A DNA stretch of 58,884 nt, counting the filler, from Platydemus manokwari (taxonomy: Eukaryota): NCBI GenBank assembly GCA_037951405.1. It is 6 parts of 6 records of this genome, joined end to end, with 100 filler letters (N's around TTAATTAATTAA, not from the genome) between each part and the next. Parts side by side here need not be neighbours in the genome. Positions count along the whole stretch, not along the records: positions 9,833 to 18,800 come from JBBMOY011321649.1; 5 more parts are not named here. One strand, given 5' to 3'. A program made the translations under genes and the position numbers. Shown here piece by piece: positions 9,833-18,800 of the stretch. Each line of letters opens with the position of its first letter. Position 1 is the stretch's first letter. The notes beneath the pieces are model-generated. The model was not told the origin of the DNA, did not search any database, and was given only the letters and a program-made list of their open reading frames with translations.

Positions 9833-10149
9833 ATTTATTTTTAATATAATTTTTTAAAAATATCTTTTAACTCAAATTATATATATTTTAATTATTTATA
9901 GTATTTTTAAATAAACCTCACAATACCAATTGATTATCGAGTTATAAATATGGATTAATATATAGGTAGAATGTGATTGGCTATTGCCACGTGCACTTGT
10001 CGAATCAGTGTGTATAAAATCTCTGCGGGTTATTTTCCACGGTTTCGATTTTTTCACCTATCCAATAAATGTACTAATTCAGTCTTTGAAAAAGGTTTCA
10101 ACCTCGAATAATGCGACTCAGCCTTGCTTAAAGCAGGAGACTATTCAAC

Positions 10150-11190
10150 TAATTTGATAACTGAAGGTATCATACAATTATCACTTTCAAATAATAATTT
10201 TTTAAAAAGTTTTATTACTGGTTGTCATCCTGGAGAATCTCATTTAAAAATCATGAACCCATTTAATAAAAGTAATCCAGTCCATAATTTTACTACATGA
10301 ACATTTTAAAAATAAGAAGAAATTTTAAATAATTATAATACAATTCTAGAATTAAATGATTCATCTGGAACCAGACTATTCCTCCAATTCCAAAAGATAA
10401 ACATAGACAAATGAATAAGATTGATGAAATCATAATGCAGCATGATGTTAATTTACAAGATTTACAAGATAGAAATTTTGCAGATTCAAAAATGATACAG
10501 AATATGTCTTACGTTTAGAGAAAAAATAGAAAGAATTGGGCAGTGCATGTAACACGCGAGAAAAGCTAAAGATCTAGTTATTAAAAATATTTGAAAACAC
10601 AGAAGAAAAAGTTAAAAAAGTAATTATAGAAAGTTATATGGTAAAAACCTATTATCTCAAGATTTACTCAATGTTTATAAGGTTAATAAGAAATTTTTGA
10701 AGGTAGAAATATTTGGAAATTTTGTGAATATGAAATAATTTTATAACATGCAGAAAATGATGGTGAATCTGTGTGTGTTCAAAGATTTATTAGAACTTTA
10801 AAGAAAGATGAGGAGACATTTTACAGCTAAAGGAAATCAAAAAAAGGATAATGATTCATCACAAAGCATAGGTAATAAATATTATAAAAAATTCATTGAA
10901 GTATTGGGACTAGTACTGCAGAACTTAAAAAAATTCAGAAATTATTAAAGAAAAAGTTGATAATCAAAATCATGAAAATGAAATCTTAAATGAAAAATTA
11001 AAATTTAAAGTTTTAAATAGAGTAAGAATAATAAATGTAAAAATAAATTTAACAAAGGTCATACTGCTAATTTTACAAAAGAAATATATATTATTTAAGA
11101 AGTTTGTAAAACAAAATCTATAACTTTTAAATTAATTGATTTAAAATATGAAAAATTATGGGGGAGATTTTATAGTAATGAACTTCATTA
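10150..11190 (+). mobile_element. decayed Polinton/Maverick (adintovirus-like) segment: PLA2-like ORF plus retroviral-type integrase
   Basis: 10381-10535 gives MNKIDEIIMQHDVNLQDLQDRNFADSKMIQ..TFREKIER (PLA2-like D..C/M..HD..Y..DR..AD motif). 10770-11190 gives CVQRFIRTLK..HFTAKGN..KFKVLNRVRI..FNKGHTANFTKEIY..TFKLIDL..GRFYSNEL (Polinton integrase ERFNRTLK...KFKVGD.VRI...KGYT.NW..EIF...G.FY..EL). Many stops and frameshifts. Confidence 0.75.
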
Positions 11191-12275
11191 AAATAAATTT
11201 TTGAAGATGAAAAGTAAAAGTTTCTTAATTTCTTTGGTTCAAGGCATATCACCGTTGAGATGAGAATTTATACCTGAGACCAGGAAGAAGGGAGCGGCAC
11301 TCATGAAAACAAAAAATGGATTTCCAGTGTAATCTATATCTAAGACATTTTATTATTATGTTTGTACTTTTAATTAATAAAAAATAAATAAATTTTTATT
11401 TAAAAACTAATATTGGAATTAACTTTAGGTTGATAAATGTTGAAATATTTTTAAAATAAGTTTTTTTTAATATTTATTAATTATATTTTTACACCAGAAT
11501 TGGGAATTGAATTGATAAACATGGCAATCTATTTCCAAACAACCATAATTTTCATATAAAATTTGTTAGTCGATTTATTATCACTGCATAAATTATATTT
11601 TGATTAATGGTTTATATCATCTGAAATTCCTCATAAATTTGATATTATTTTTAAATTATAGCTTTAGATCTTCTTCAATTTTTATCCGAGGAAACATTTC
11701 AGTATTCATAATGATATTTTCAATATTTATATTAGGAATTGGATTTTCAAAAATTACTTTTTTAAAATTTAATTTTTGGTGAATCATTTCTTCCAGTAAA
11801 AATTGTTACAGAGTCAAAATTTTTTTGAATATTTATTGTTAATTCATTCATCACGGTAAATGATTTCGGCCTAATGGCAAGTCAGAGGTAAATCAAGTTA
11901 AATGACAGTGGATAGGAATCCATTGGTAGACAATTATGGAATAGTGAATTCTAAATACTACCAGATACTGAACAGTAGAGTGGCCTAAAAATCGACAATT
12001 AATTGATTAACTCTGTTTTTAACAGAGCAAAATTTTACACCACTTATATATTATGTTTTGGCAGGTCATCTTCTTTATAATTTCAATATATTCCACTTTT
12101 TGAGCTCAATTTTGTAATACACCGTCGTCATTTATGATAATACCAGTTATGCAATATTATAACAGTTTATCTGACCTATTAATCTGTTATGTAAATTTGA
12201 AGTAAAATTTCAAATTTATTTATGATTGAAACATTATAATTTTAGTATGATTTGCCTTCATTAATACGATTAAAT

Positions 12276-12511
12276 GTGCCCTTGATTATGAAAGTGGTAT
12301 AAGTCATATATTTCTTTTTTGGAGATATTATGGGATTTGCATGTTAAAGAATTAAAAAATATTTGAGTATTATGGAATGAAATATTTTGACAATTAATTA
12401 CTGCCGGTAAATCAGCATTTAATATGATTGTGAAATTTATTACCATTTTTAAATGGAAATTTGGTTTTGAAAGGTTGAAATGACTTATACCACTTTCATA
12501 ATCAAGGGCTC
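12276..12511. mobile_element. MITE with 31-bp TIRs and 4-bp AAAT TSD (Sola1-like)
   Basis: GTGCCCTTGATTATGAAAGTGGTATAAGTCA ... TGACTTATACCACTTTCATAATCAAGGGCTC, flanked by AAAT at 12272-12275 and 12512-12515 (AWWT target typical of Sola1). Confidence 0.85.
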
Positions 12512-13399
12512 AAATATATTCTTCCTTTCTGTCATTCATTATAAATACTCTATATTTTATTTCTTCTAATATAATAATCGTAGAAATCTTTGCTTTTGGA
12601 ATTAATTTTTAAGGAGATTTCCAAATATAATTAATTAATATGAGAAAAAGAAATTGCAATTCCTCAAAGGGTTAATTCATCTCATTGTAAACTAATGATT
12701 GAGATACGATTTAAGATTTTTATTGAAAGAAATGTTACAAATATCAAATGGAATTTTTAAATAAATCAATCATCTTGGCTATGATTCATTTCGATTAGTC
12801 ATTTTGAGCCATGAAATGATTTGAATCGCTAATACCAGATCAGTAGGTATTTGCATTCATAATTACATAATATAACCATCGCACCGACAAATCATATACA
12901 TTCTTTAACTACCACATGCCAATTAATCTCTCCGGGTACATTGTTACTAGTAAAAGAAAAATTATGTATAGCATAATGACGTTTCTTTACTATGTTCTAA
13001 TCATTACAAGTGATTTTCCAGTTCATCATTTAAAATGATGTCGACATTTTAATTTTCTTTTACTTTTAATTTGATATATTTTTTCACAGAATAAATTTAT
13101 AATAAATTTTATAATTCACATTTTGTTAAAAATTTAAAAGATAATTTCACACAAATTTATCTTTTGTTACTTGTTGAGTTTAGAAGAAATGAAATAATTT
13201 GATACGAATTTGATTGTTTTATTCTTCATCACGAATTATCTCACTATTCGTTTAAATTAATTTCCAAAATTTATAAAACGGCACAATTAATGTATTATTC
13301 GATTTCTAATTTTATTACTTATTAATTAAAAAGGGATTCCGGATATATATTCGATGGATTGACCATTCTGTTAAAGCTGTTATTGATAGTGAACATTCA

Positions 13400-14050
13400 A
13401 GAAATTGATAAAGAATTTTTAAACAAACTAAATTAAACGATAAAGAATCTTGTATATAAAATCATACCAAAGTGATTTCTTGTTATCAACAATCAACATT
13501 TAAAATCAACTGAAGGTCGAATTGATTGTTGACGTAATGATCGATGAAAATCCTAATCATTTCATTATAATTATTATTTCAAATAAAACAAAAGCTATTT
13601 TCTATTATGATTTACATTCCAAAAATGATCTATGACCATCGATATAACACTTTCCAAATCTTTCATCAGATTTTTGAACTTGAAGAATCAGCAGTAATAT
13701 AATTGCTATTCACTAACAGACAATTTTTAAAGTACACATAATAAATATTTGATTTCTCTGATTCAGAAACATATGGATTGTATGGCTGACTATTAAATTA
13801 TTAAACATCTTCTAAAGCCAAAAACTTGATTGATTAAAAATTCTATATCTCAAATTGATTTGATCCTTAACAAACATTTCATTTGAGCTTTATTGTACAG
13901 TTTGTCAGAAATGTAAATTAAACGAAGCTGCAAAATTAGGGGGTAGATTGTATTGTTGAGAAACACGCAGTTCTTCAAAATTTATAATCGAAAACCAGAT
14001 CGGTACAAAATATATCTACAAAATTCTTACTCAATTAACATAAATTATTT
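13400..14050 (-). mobile_element. decayed non-LTR (LINE) RT fragment
   Basis: Minus-strand FLINQVFGFRR (QFGFR motif) with a degenerate LLD.QKAFD.VW-like segment downstream. Many stops. Confidence 0.35.
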
Positions 14051-14440
14051 GAAGCTCATATTCTTTTCCCATAGTAATTCAATCATAACAGTCTTAAATA
14101 ACTGATAAATATCGAGTTTTCTAATTATAAACTAAAATTATGTTATTAATTTATAATTTTATAAACATGTTGAATGTAAATATTTATTACAGCACTGTTT
14201 TAGAGGTTCTATGTATGTTTATTATAATTTCTTCTCTCTATTTGGCGCATGCTGAAGATTTGTCCTAGTAATCCAAATTTCATTAACAAATTAATTTATA
14301 ATTATTTAAAATTATAAATTCACTTAATACTTCGGTATCAATAATTTTACGATTCCTATCGATGAAAAAGAGTTCAATAATCAATTGTTATTTAAAGAAC
14401 CTACAACGGAATCAAACAAACATAAAGCAAAATACACACA

Positions 14441-15160
14441 TTAGCCAGTATGAACGTTACAAGGATGTCGATGCTTCGGATTGTGTCGCAGATAAAAAGC
14501 AGATCTGATTTCTGACATTGTACTATTCAGATAATTAAATAATAATTCGATCTCGAACTGAATGCTCATTTTGTCCGTTAAATCATAGAGCTCTTTGACA
14601 ATCGCTAATATTTCTTGTGACCACGGATGGAATTTGGTAATGACCTTTCCCGATTTTAAACCCCTTAAAATATGACAAATAAACGGCAATATGTATTCCA
14701 ATGAATCTTTGTATTCTTGATAACTATCTCGCAACAGACCTTTAAGATCGATACATATATGAATATCTTTCGCCAATGTCAATCGTCCAAGAAAGTTTCC
14801 CAAATTACGAAGATGATTCATTGCTCGAATGTCAATCGTGCAATTCTTCAATATGATGTCAATCTCTTTCTTTGCCAATTCAATAACCATATTACTGAAT
14901 CCGGGTGAATATTCTCCATAAGCATTTATAAACGATGAATACATGTCTATAAGATTCGTCTCTATTCGACATCTGGAAATGAGAAATATTCCCAACCAAT
15001 TCTCGGAGTTTTGTGGAACAATATTGGAGATTTCTTTGGAAGTCTGACCAATATTCAAATCGGACATATTGTTGATGAGAAATATCACACGCTTGTGAAC
15101 CGATTCACCAGGAAAATTAGATGAATTAATTTTAGATAATTTCAGTTGTTTTTGTGTCAT
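14441..15160 (-). CDS. stand-alone CNOT1-type MIF4G (CAF1/DDX6-binding) domain protein, 239 aa, intronless
   Basis: Colinear with the central CNOT1 MIF4G: VIFLINNMS (IAFIFNNLS), WLGIFLISRCRIETNL (WVSQYLVMKRVSIEPNF), LRNLGNFLGRLTLAK (LKNLGHWLGMITLAK), LEYILPFICHIL (LLYVVPFVAKVL), HPWSQEILAIVKELY (NPWTMAIMNVLAELH), IQFEIELL (LKFEIEVL). ATG 15160 has an in-frame TAA three codons upstream; the ORF ends with its own stop. Confidence 0.85.
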   Translation of the reverse strand: MTQKQLKLSKINSSNFPGESVHKRVIFLINNMSDLNIGQTSKEISNIVPQNSENWLGIFLISRCRIETNLIDMYSSFINAYGEYSPGFSNMVIELAKKEIDIILKNCTIDIRAMNHLRNLGNFLGRLTLAKDIHICIDLKGLLRDSYQEYKDSLEYILPFICHILRGLKSGKVITKFHPWSQEILAIVKELYDLTDKMSIQFEIELLFNYLNSTMSEIRSAFYLRHNPKHRHPCNVHTG

Positions 15161-15681
15161 GAGATATTAATCGGACATTGATAATTTTTATTGAATGTTA
15201 TTAATTAAAATATTATTTGCTATCATTATGAAAATCTGACGATAATTCAATTATCTGTAAAGAAAAGAGTTTATTTTTAGGATTCTTTCAACCATAAAGT
15301 TTTCAACAATAGTTTTTCTCAGAAGAGATTGATTCAATAATTATTACACAATTGCAGATTATTAATTTTAAAATTGTTGTAATACTTGAAATAAAAATGA
15401 AATAGCAACACACTTAATTAATCATAGAAGTAAATCTACATTATACGGAACTCGTGCTCATACATTGTCGCACACACGTGGTTATATAATTTATTTACTG
15501 ATATTTACTGATAATTATTAATCAATGTAGAAAAATAAATATATAAATAATAATTCTACGAAATCTACGTGACATAGATTGAATCTGGTTAAAGTCTGAA
15601 TAATAGAAAAAGAAAAATTTACAAATTGATTAAAGACAATTGTTATAGACCAATCGATCGAGTTGTCTGAGACAATCATCT

Positions 15682-17921
15682 CTAAGTATTGGAATTTTCA
15701 TGATAGACTTGAACGGCCATGATATCACCAGTAGAAATAGTTTGTGTACCCACACTTGTTGTCCCAATGGACCGCTGAGATCGATTACTTGCTTCAAAAG
15801 AGCTCGACGGTCTCGATATATCCTGAATGGAATTGATTTCCCCTGGTATACCACTCGAACTGCTTAAACATTCTGTAGACGATTGAGTGGGACTCGGAAC
15901 AGTTGTCACTGAATAATCTCCCAAATCAACTTGGTTTGGTTGATAATCCCAATCATTTAAATCGTCCTCTGAGTCCATTTTTGACAATTGAAGAATCTCT
16001 GCCAGCTCCTCATCTATATCGTGATAGGTGTTAATAATATTCCGTTGTTCTGACATAAGACTGGGACAACACGACACAGAATCGTTATCAACACTATGAG
16101 TATTGTTGAATGATTTTTTCTGAGTGTGAACAAGATCTCCACAAAATCTTTGAACGATATCTTTATCGGATTCTTTCCAAACTTGAGTTGCTCGCCACTT
16201 AGCTCTAGATTGTTTCGGGGCGAGAATCGCATTGAAATAAATGCATTCACCGACCTACACAAATATCATTAACAGATATCTATTAATAAAACAATGACGA
16301 TTGAAAATGAACATATTTAGTAATATACTTTTAATTCTCTCGATGTAAATAATTAGAATTATGCGTTAACAGTTACTTGACCATTAGTGATCTTAAAAGT
16401 TTGTGAAGCATATCCAAATACGATTTTTCACTCTTTAATAGAATTAAACATAAATCTAATCCAACATATTATTGCTGTAATGAAGACAGTATTATAGTAG
16501 TTTCAATTCAAATGTAATCCACTGACTAACATTAAGTATCGAATTAGTCCTAAGATAAGACGAGTCCCAGTTCTTACCGAAAAACTATTTTAAAATTAAA
16601 TCTTTTATGAATCCAGTAATAAAACATAAAATTTGTAGAAAAAAACAATATAAAATTATTTTAAATCGATTCAAATAAGGAAAAACAATTCAAGAAAATC
16701 TAGTTTTATATTCGACCTAATGAGATATTTATATTTTGTGGTGTTGAAAATACTCCTGAATTTCTCAATATTTACCTGAAAATGTCTTTGTAGATCGTCG
16801 AGGTGTTTGAAGATTGATTTGTCAAAGAAAACATGTTCATGTTGACCTAGGTCGACAATTCCCCAGAGTTTAGTCACATGGTAAACGTTTCCACATTGAT
16901 TAATGATTGTGCGCACCCCATCTTTAGTAGATACATCATCATTGACAATAATGCTTATCTCTTCAGTATCTAGACAAGAAACCTGGCCTTTTCTGTCAAT
17001 ATGAAATAAAGTTGTTTGCTTGCGAATAAATTCCTCCAATTCGATTTTCGTCCATCCAATGCAATCTCGAACGGAGGACGGCGCTTGTGCTAAATACAGG
17101 AACAAATGATTTACGCTGATCTTAGCACAAGTTTTTCTGCGTATTATAGTGCGTAAAAACATTGCAGCTTGAAACTCTCGACTGTCAATGGCAACTGATA
17201 GTTTAGAGCTCGTTGGAATAAGCCTAGGTTCCTTTTCTCTTTCAGAATGATTTATTATCATTGAAGTCGGTCGACCTCGTTTCACAACATTTCTATTGCT
17301 TATAACCGCTGATCTTGGTCTAGTTTTCGAAGCTCTCGAAAGACAAATAGACGAGAAATTGTCCCGAAGGCTTACTAAATCGCCCTGAATCTCAAATACA
17401 TGAGGATGTCGCTGGATAAATTTACGGAAGAAAGCTTGGGGACCAACAACTTTACGAATCGATTCAGATGCCTGAGATAAATGGCCAGCTAAGCTTTTAA
17501 TTTGAATCCAATGTTCTTCACGCTTTGCCAGTTGGGACTGAAAATATTTCACTGCTTCCGTTTCTTGTGCAAGATCGACAGGTCGTCTTAATCGATAAGA
17601 CTCACTTTCTGAACGAGAAATATTTCCATTCTCAAGATCCACACTGCTCGCACAATCTGATACATCGATTGGCGATACAAATTGACCATCGATTTGAAAT
17701 AGCGATGGATATTTCTCCATAAATGATCGCAGGCCGCTTATATTGAAACCACAAACCTCTTGCATGTCATTGCTAACGTTTTCTGCGAAAATTTTGCTCC
17801 CGAGTTCTTCTATCGATAACGATGTTTCGGAGTTCATAAGGACTTCTAATAAGAACAACATAGCACGGTGATTTGGATCGTTCATCATTTTATATAAACT
17901 GGCTTCTCTCAAATAATTCAT
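15682..17921 (-). CDS. Egalitarian-like RNA-binding protein (3 winged-helix/LOTUS-like repeats + OB/cold-shock-like domain + C-terminal LC8 motif), 572 aa, 2 exons
   Basis: Exon 1 17921-16776 (donor CAG|GTAAAT) and exon 2 16254-15682 (acceptor GTGTAG|GTC) join as HFQ|VGECIYFNAILAPKQSRAKWRATQVWKE. Egl-type repeats GLRSFMEKYPSLF, IKSLAGHLSQASESIR..FIQRHPHVF and LEEFIRKQTTLF. C-terminus VGTQTISTGDIMAVQVY resembles the Egl (S/T)QT.STGD dynein-light-chain site. Confidence 0.85.
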
Positions 17922-17952
17922 ACACGAATCAACATCTAATAAAAATGATGAA

Positions 17953-17955
<3 letters not shown>

Positions 17956-18012
<57 letters not shown>
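17956..18012. repeat. (AAT)n microsatellite immediately upstream of the Egl-like ATG
   Basis: About 19 perfect AAT units. Confidence 0.95.
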
Positions 18013-18800
18013 CAAAAATAATAATAATAATAAATCAAATATAAATCTCAAGAAATATATTAAAAAGATACTAAATGTGTACTTAATGCCTTGTCCAATA
18101 TATTAATTAATAATAAAACATTATATTGTGTACCGAATATTATTTTCAGCAAATTCTGGTTCAATTCATTTTCTATTTTATTCTATATTTTCCTAACATA
18201 AAATCGATATCGAGAAAATCATGGAAAAACATTCTAAAATTATCCGTGATTAAGACTAGATGTGAATTAAAGGATTCCTCAAATGATATTTCACGAATTT
18301 GTTAATAAACAAACCCATGATATTAAAACGATATCGAGCTGACAAAACGGGATGATGATATCGAAACAATATTAAATATCCTCTCAATACATTCCCGGTA
18401 TCATAAATTTTTTGTCAATATCTTTGTAAATATCAGCCCTAAAATCGATATCCAATAAAAACGAAAAATTCGTTCAAAAACTGATTAATCTAATTTCGGG
18501 TATTGGCATTATGAAATTTTGATAATTATCTGTCACCCGTAGGAATTTGTAATGGAAAGTTTTTTATAATTTAATTTAAGGACTCGATTTTGGTTTGTAA
18601 ATTTTCAAATAAAATTTTAGGTTCAACGATAATTCTGTAGGAGCTGAAACTCCGAAACATTCATCACTACACTACTGATTATGTCGATATATAAATCGAT
18701 AAAAAAAAATCTTCTGAATACATTCATGTCTATTTCACTGATTTGTCCGCAAGAATCTAAGATATCTGGAAATATTTGATTCTATTAACGAACAACTATT

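Follow-up and report, generated by a model that had tools for sequence, protein, structure and literature searches.

We analysed a 58,884-nucleotide (nt) stretch of DNA (hereafter the window), joined from six parts of the Platydemus manokwari assembly GCA_037951405.1, and concentrated on the 8968-nt piece at positions 9833–18800 (record JBBMOY011321649.1; all coordinates below are those of the window unless a contig is named). Two genes follow one another on the minus strand of this piece. The first, gene A, is the orthologue of egal-1, an Egalitarian-like (Egl-like) gene of planarians, and the second, gene B or mini-NOT1, encodes the MIF4G domain of the CCR4-NOT scaffold CNOT1 as a free-standing protein. 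We read the pair as two separately translated planarian genes, each of which is probably its own transcription unit, and assign this reading a probability of about 0.55. Since egal-1 has already been published, the new element is the flatworm-restricted family of stand-alone NOT1 MIF4G proteins, together with its position beside egal-1; no description of a stand-alone CNOT1 MIF4G protein was found in the literature searched. An earlier, sequence-only reading of this DNA had taken the organism for a flatworm, which is correct and can be narrowed to a planarian, and had placed both genes on the minus strand ~520 bp apart; open reading frame (ORF) calls gave 521 nt between the stop codon of gene A at 15684–15682 and the ATG of gene B at 15160. 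The layout of the locus, for which the exons of gene A were searched separately, is as follows.

18628–18664, minus strand: candidate first coding mini-exon of gene A, tentative (MNVSEFQLLQNY plus one base, then GT)
17936–18033, minus strand: (ATT)32 microsatellite followed by tttttattag, with the AG at 17937–17936 (tandem-repeat scan)
16776–17921, minus strand: main coding exon of gene A, 382 codons, ending in RHFQ, phase 0
16255–16775, minus strand: intron of gene A, 521 nt, GT..AG (gtaaat at 16775, tgtgtag ending at 16255)
15682–16254, minus strand: last exon of gene A, 190 codons plus TAG, placed by frame continuity
15724–15747, minus strand: LC8-site-like motif TQTISTGD, from family conservation and a profile match to Egl
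15161–15681, minus strand: intergenic stretch, 521 nt, 24% guanine plus cytosine (GC)
15255–15270, minus strand: acceptor-like motif ACTCTTTTCTTTACAG, the best such site on this strand, with a site count within chance
14441–15160, minus strand: gene B (mini-NOT1), intronless, 239 codons plus TAA, with the MIF4G domain at 15112–14471

Residues 17–230 of the gene B protein matched the Pfam family CNOT1_CAF1_bind (E = 4.7e−42), and its top solved relatives were the MIF4G domains of human and yeast NOT1, with E values of about 1e−26 for the human CNOT1 structures 4ct4 and 4gmj. An AlphaFold model of the protein (predicted local distance difference test score, pLDDT, 74) aligned with CNOT1 MIF4G at a template-modelling (TM) score of 0.74 and about 29% identity, and the UPF2, PAIP1 and eIF4G-type MIF4G domains ranked far below CNOT1 in the fold search. 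An in-frame TAA stands 9 nt ahead of the ATG and closes the reading frame. When five full-length CNOT1 proteins of 2–3 thousand amino acids (aa) were compared with the piece by tblastn, the match was confined to 15112–14483, and none of the other CNOT1 domains (N-terminal HEAT, TTP-binding, DUF3819/CNOT9-binding and NOT1 C-terminal) was found in the 9-kb piece. The possibility that gene B is an exon of a full CNOT1 gene was rejected on this ground, as the full-length queries match only the MIF4G part of the piece. Relatives of 223–247 aa share both the N-terminus (MTQKQ.K) and the tail (SAFYLRHNPKHRHPCN) of gene B, and the family gene is an uninterrupted ORF in all five loci. Against the orthologue on contig L001, from the planarian sequencing run SRR33002330 and the closest relative with DNA, non-synonymous divergence (dN) was 0.10 with synonymous divergence (dS) saturated; gene B is under purifying selection.

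Judged by these comparisons, gene B encodes the CNOT1 MIF4G domain on its own, as a whole protein, in agreement with the name mini-NOT1 given by the sequence-only reading. It shares its fold with the MIF4G domain of human CNOT1 (4GMJ with CAF1; 4CT4 and 5ANR with DDX6), but there the MIF4G is one domain in a 2,400-aa scaffold, whereas here it makes up the entire 239-aa product. Because the rest of the scaffold is absent from the protein, gene B cannot assemble CCR4-NOT.

To place the protein among its relatives, we searched 1.84 billion representatives exhaustively. Two small clusters were recovered (422 and 181 bits), followed by a gap down to matches of ≤111 bits, which were canonical CNOT1; no protein combining Egl and MIF4G domains was found among the best matches. 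Named members come from the monogenean Protopolystoma and the cestodes Schistocephalus and Dibothriocephalus, and protein P0002 is very probably the Schmidtea mini-NOT1. Seven mini-NOT1 proteins formed one clade (Shimodaira–Hasegawa-like approximate likelihood ratio test, SH-aLRT, 100; stem 1.18), whose sister group, with weak support (76), includes a trematode canonical CNOT1. On present sequences mini-NOT1 is thus a small clade seen only in flatworms. Metagenomes were scanned twice, with a protein alignment and then with an L002-derived DNA pattern, and neither scan found anything; exact-protein look-ups of the gene B protein and of Schmidtea P0002 returned no matching contig.

That gene B is merely a stray exon, fragment or pseudogene of canonical CNOT1, and not its own gene, strikes us as scarcely credible. 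The databases do contain many short entries with this domain that are fragments of full-length CNOT1, such as P0126, which in contig L005 is flanked by the TTP-binding and NOT1 C-terminal exons. Gene B, however, has its own ATG behind the upstream stop, a stop codon and C-terminal tail that are conserved in relatives, no further CNOT1 domain within 9 kb and a low dN at saturated dS; it shares a 3-residue deletion with its family (described below), belongs to a separate clade with 100% support, and exists in planarians alongside a separate full-length Smed-not1.

Two side observations concern these CNOT1-related sequences. The canonical CNOT1 locus on L005, an ENA contig (L005:6835–14687), has its MIF4G part called as a separate 273-aa ORF, flanked by the TTP-binding part and the DUF3819/NOT1 part; this CNOT1 gene also contains DDE_3 transposase-like ORFs on the opposite strand, with a reverse-transcriptase ORF nearby. 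Mini-NOT1 of L001 and of the window are 83% identical as proteins, and their third-position GC is 0.78 and 0.35, respectively, so the two related planarians differ sharply in GC.

We then compared the partner-binding surfaces of the mini-NOT1 proteins with those of CNOT1. The CAF1-binding loops of gene B appear to be remodelled, while the DDX6 patch appears largely kept. In the α6–α7 loop that binds CAF1, K1208-P1209-I1210 is deleted in 7/7 mini-NOT1 proteins; the N1207–S1249 pair is likewise lost in all seven, as is the PPN of PPNPW, which reads KFHPW in gene B. On the CAF1 side, K1218, V1251 and W1258 are kept in the seven, with P1257 and H1212 also listed as kept. Among the four DDX6 contacts compared, E1137 is invariant and positions 1098, 1101 and 1140 remain hydrophobic (Ile/Val/Leu, Met/Leu/Ile and Leu, respectively). 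Position 1098 varies in canonical CNOT1 too, and F1140 of CNOT1 is replaced by Leu in gene B. The glutamate and the hydrophobic patch named as DDX6 contacts are retained, and the CAF1 contact of gene B would be either lost or re-tuned.

A plausible role for gene B, as part of the two-gene reading, would be that of a free MIF4G adaptor that binds DDX6. Through its altered loops it may also bind one of the several CAF1 paralogues that planarians possess, and by such contacts it would modulate canonical NOT1 or compete with it. Free-standing proteins of the MIF4GD/SLIP1 type use a single MIF4G domain as an adaptor in mRNA metabolism; they resemble gene B in having this one domain, but belong to other MIF4G subfamilies. 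A stand-alone CNOT1 MIF4G that is flatworm-restricted and strongly conserved, with remodelled CAF1 loops and a kept DDX6 patch, should be of interest to the CCR4-NOT field. Gene B could naturally uncouple or activate DDX6.

The identity of gene A follows from its match to a described planarian gene. Egalitarian-like-1 of Schmidtea mediterranea (egal-1, dd_8302) has been published (Development 2025, PMC12579938) and was described with the same three parts as gene A, namely N-terminal modules, a spiralian central region and a C-terminal dynein-light-chain motif. Gene A is 81% identical in exon 1 and 73% identical in the last exon to the Schmidtea fragment P0008, which in turn matches the published Smed Egal-1 sequence (Table S3, PMC12579938); this makes gene A the orthologue of egal-1 in another species of planarian. 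Compared by eye, egal-2 and egal-3 as published diverge much more from it. In Schmidtea, wounding induces egal-1 in longitudinal muscle within 3 h, and the gene controls the earliest asymmetric step of planarian regeneration (PMC12579938). A conserved neighbour encoding a free NOT1 MIF4G is an obvious candidate partner for egal-1.

The run SRR33002330 also holds a second Egl-like gene, on L007, about 50% identical to gene A; it is a paralogue, not the orthologue, and its type is probably egal-2 or egal-3. The egal-1 last exon of that run lies on L008, with 81% identity to gene A and a dN of 0.12. A much slower evolution of mini-NOT1 than of egal-1 was considered and dropped, as it rested on the paralogue L007, while the true orthologue on L008 gives a dN of 0.12 versus 0.10 for mini-NOT1, so that both genes evolve at similar rates.

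Gene A consists of two exons (17921–16776 and 16254–15682) encoding 572 aa. At the exon junction, residues 162|163 of P0008 align contiguously to both exons and the alignment to P0008 stops exactly at the end of exon 1; in addition, the L007 paralogue has an intron at the same position (after RHFK). Pfam WH_Egal matched gene A in three stretches (E = 1.1e−50), and exon 1 accommodates ED1 (about 17870–17670), ED2 (about 17570–17364) and ED3 (about 17189–16986). These are followed by an oligonucleotide/oligosaccharide-binding (OB) fold that is split by the intron (first half 16910–16776, second half 16254–16141), and the last exon also encodes an acidic/Ser-rich linker and the C-terminal motif. 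A word search with gene A returned about 200 proteins of 560–630 aa from nemerteans, annelids, molluscs and brachiopods, at 35–42% identity, with the same three domains and without an exonuclease domain. Gene A has the features of the Egal-1 type: the three-module N-terminus, the spiralian central region, the C-terminal motif and a length of about 560–630 aa.

The sole solved relative of the gene A N-terminus was Drosophila Egl (9rvy_D, residues 11–164, E = 2.9e−10). The two proteins share the ED1–ED3 winged-helix/LOTUS-like domains (PDB 9RVY; NSMB 2026, PMC13186709), but Egl is 1004 aa long versus 572 aa and carries an exonuclease-homology/XAD module where gene A has an S1/cold-shock-like OB-fold. 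The latter assignment comes from an AlphaFold model of the intron-spanning domain, built on the orthologous segment P0008:106–203, which folds as a five-stranded barrel (pLDDT 83) with the S1-like domain of DBC1 and the cold-shock domains of Unr and YB-1 as its closest folds. As modelled, the segment after ED3 is an OB-fold of this class replacing the Egl exonuclease module, and neither exon of gene A gave a Pfam or PDB match to the Egl exonuclease-homology domain or XAD, which are part of the RNA pocket of Egl. Compared with the Egl–RNA structure, gene A retains the ED2 helix GH.SQAS, Ser127 included, and the ED1 positions His31 and Cys35 of Egl align with Glu and Ser. These two Egl residues take part in minor-groove reading, and C35Y abolishes BicD binding.

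At the C-terminus, all proteins from the word search end in the tail [CST]QT.STGD.. A.Q.Y. A profile of this tail family had Drosophila Egl 948–977 as its sole match in the PDB; the E value of 0.19 is weak, which is offset by its being the same protein as the N-terminal match and by its falling on the known dynein light chain (Dlc) site. The profile lays TQTIS of gene A on SQTLS of Egl, with Thr and Ser on S965 and S969, and the egl2pt mutation S965K/S969R abolishes Dlc binding of Egl. A PDB sequence search with gene A exon 2, or with its last 35 residues alone, gave no matches. The TQTISTGD motif thus matches, at the level of its residues, the LC8 (dynein light chain) site of Egl. The description of gene A as an Egl-like RNA adaptor in the sequence-only reading consequently holds for the winged-helix domains and the C-terminal LC8 motif, and does not extend to the exonuclease/XAD RNA-pocket module, which is absent, or to the changed ED1 positions.

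The 5′ end of gene A probably lies further upstream than the ATG at 17921, as the S. mediterranea Egal-1 protein starts 16 residues earlier (MDSSDFVPCISDVDSC). Planarian Egal-1 orthologues begin with MD..D.VP.ISDVDSC, then MNYL (sequences in PMC12579938), their starts being MDSSDFVPCIS or MDCLDIVPPSIS. In gene A, codons for DVDSC stand in frame directly before the ATG, after tttttattag, and translation reads ...LLLISSFLLDVDSCM. Because this matches the planarian ISDVDSC–MNYL junction, the real start is probably on an upstream coding mini-exon, and the end of the repeat tract at 17936–18033 (tttttattag) is probably where a 5′ intron ends. Within the 879 nt upstream of gene A, M[DN]..[DE][FILV] is matched only at 18664–18628 (MNVSEFQLLQNY), which we tentatively propose as the first coding mini-exon. 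Should the stretch instead be non-coding, a 5-codon upstream ORF at 17919–17935 on the minus strand (ATGTTGATTCGTGTATGA) would overlap the ATG at 17921.

The stretch between the two genes contains the acceptor-like sequence CTCTTTTCTTTACAG, which ends at 15255 (AG at 15256–15255), 94 nt before the ATG of gene B. All three frames after this AG reach a stop before that ATG, so the site cannot join an upstream frame to gene B, and a fusion of gene A with gene B through it is ruled out. The sequence-only reading had described a strong splice acceptor ~95 nt upstream of mini-NOT1 that could not be read in frame into it: its position and the closed frames agree with our measurements, and the motif is the best such site on the minus strand. 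With an acceptor defined as ≥10/12 pyrimidines followed by YAG, the minus strand of the 8968-nt piece had 8 sites versus 5.0 ± 2.2 in shuffles, and a better site (12/12 pyrimidines) lies antisense inside gene A. The motif at 15255 is real, but its frequency is not beyond chance. In L001 there was no comparable acceptor within 279 nt upstream of mini-NOT1. The true acceptor of the gene A intron (tgtgtag, 16255) is much weaker than the 15255 motif. If the genes are transcribed separately, the 15255 site would either have arisen by chance or serve gene B as the 3′ splice site of a leader of its own.

The second of these options leads to a variant in which gene B is driven by a promoter of its own and begins with a short non-coding exon in or beyond the gap, with 15255 as the cis-splice acceptor of an intron in the 5′ untranslated region (UTR). 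The inability of the site to continue any upstream frame fits this variant, as do the acceptor-like sites found 17–33 nt before the ATG of mini-NOT1 in Protopolystoma and Dibothriocephalus, and parasitic flatworms use many acceptor sites for cis- as well as trans-splicing. We nevertheless consider it unlikely, given that no donor or first exon is identifiable from sequence alone, that the gene is otherwise intronless in five of five loci, and that the motif count is within chance.

Another way to explain the site is a bicistronic operon, which we regard as possible but doubtful. A single promoter upstream of egal-1 would drive a pre-mRNA through both genes, gene A would be polyadenylated in the 521-nt gap, spliced-leader trans-splicing, at 15254 or at an AG close by, would free gene B, and both proteins would be made after wounding. 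A number of observations favour such a unit and weigh against independent transcription. The genes lie on the same strand with a short gap and in gene-poor surroundings, as the piece looks gene-free for at least 4.6 kb downstream of the pair and about 0.9 kb upstream. The best acceptor-like site of the minus strand stands 94 nt before the ATG and can extend no frame. AATAAA occurs 335, 115 and 32 nt before the ATG of gene B, and one AATAAA is 13 nt before the acceptor's CAG, as is also seen where a trans-splice site adjoins a poly(A) site. Spliced-leader trans-splicing occurs in flatworms, including planarians, and the common kind of operon there comprises two genes. The adjacency of egal-1 and mini-NOT1 is probably kept in a second planarian despite saturated synonymous divergence, and were the dd_8302 contig bicistronic, annotation by its longest ORF would hide gene B.

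Other evidence speaks against the operon. Apart from the chance-level frequency of the motif and its lack of conservation in L001, the leader that trans-splicing would leave on gene B (15254–15161) would carry two upstream ATGs with ORFs of 12 and 3 codons. The gap is also long: flatworm operon candidates were defined by same-strand gaps of ≤300 bp in one study and of ≤1000 bp, with a mode near 100 bp, in another, so that the 521 nt between coding sequences exceed the first cut-off and the roughly 100-bp mode but fall below the second cut-off. The gap is thus compatible with a flatworm operon, though atypical. The spliced-leader operons of Macrostomum, Schistosoma and cestodes have the same strand, the short gap and the acceptor-like site before the second ATG in common with this locus, but their gap is usually about 100 nt. 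The supplements of the flatworm spliced-leader paper contain no CNOT1 or Egalitarian entry. Were the operon real, it would be one more flatworm operon.

We further examined the linkage of the two genes in relatives. In SRR33002330, contig L008 ends 389 nt past the egal-1 stop, within a minisatellite whose repeat unit is about 45 nt long, and the same minisatellite, in the same orientation, fills the first 192 nt of the mini-NOT1 contig L001. The repeat (L008:1588–1637 and L001:1–192) is bounded by tctgtaat[at]ga, and the assembly is broken there; the longest exact overlap between the contigs is 18 nt, and the joined gap would be about 0.7 kb or more. The 521-nt gap of the window is without this minisatellite. 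Taken together, egal-1 and mini-NOT1 are probably adjacent in this second planarian. In Mesocestoides, no mini-NOT1 was found within 10 kb downstream of the Egl-like gene, and in Dibothriocephalus the Egl-like gene and mini-NOT1 are on separate contigs, their flanks being empty over 3.2 kb and 1.4 kb (the Egl paralogue type being unassigned in both). Synteny, which the sequence-only reading had proposed as a check, is therefore probable in the planarian, while the genes are non-adjacent in the two tapeworms, a further point against the operon. Genes 0.5 kb apart are expected to stay together under neutrality, without constraint, which makes even conserved adjacency weak evidence for an operon. 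A 25-codon ORF tail upstream of the L002 mini-NOT1 was considered as a different neighbour and discarded as too short versus chance in AT-rich DNA.

Published expression data gave a further hint against co-transcription. Labels for CNOT or CCR4 were absent from the markers of the wound-induced muscle cluster, among which egal-1 is listed, and from the bulk table of the same study (PMC12579938); this carries little weight, as the annotation of a bicistronic contig would follow the longest ORF. Separately, the TOB2/BTG-family gene dd_7444 is among the markers of egal-1's wound-induced longitudinal-muscle cluster (Table S1, PMC12579938), and TOB2/BTG-family proteins bind CAF1.

The coupling of mRNA transport to repression through this pair, as put forward by the sequence-only reading, stays hypothetical. 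In its fullest form, egal-1 and mini-NOT1 would be a wound-induced unit resolved by spliced-leader trans-splicing, in which LC8-dimerised Egal-1 carries mRNAs such as notum along muscle microtubules and the free MIF4G engages DDX6 away from the deadenylase scaffold, silencing or releasing them. We hold this combined version to be very unlikely; if true, the two-gene unit would provide the post-transcriptional step that the head-versus-tail decision still lacks.

The remainder of the piece is poor in recognisable features. GC is about 18–29% in its non-coding parts and roughly 30–41% across both genes, and the 4.6 kb downstream of gene B (9833–14440, 18–28% GC) held no ORF with a homologue and no more CNOT1- or Egl-like exons. 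A weak C/D-box snoRNA-like Rfam match (snoMe28S-Am982) at 11785–11859 on the minus strand scored 27 bits versus a gathering score of 49 (E = 0.3) and is probably due to chance.

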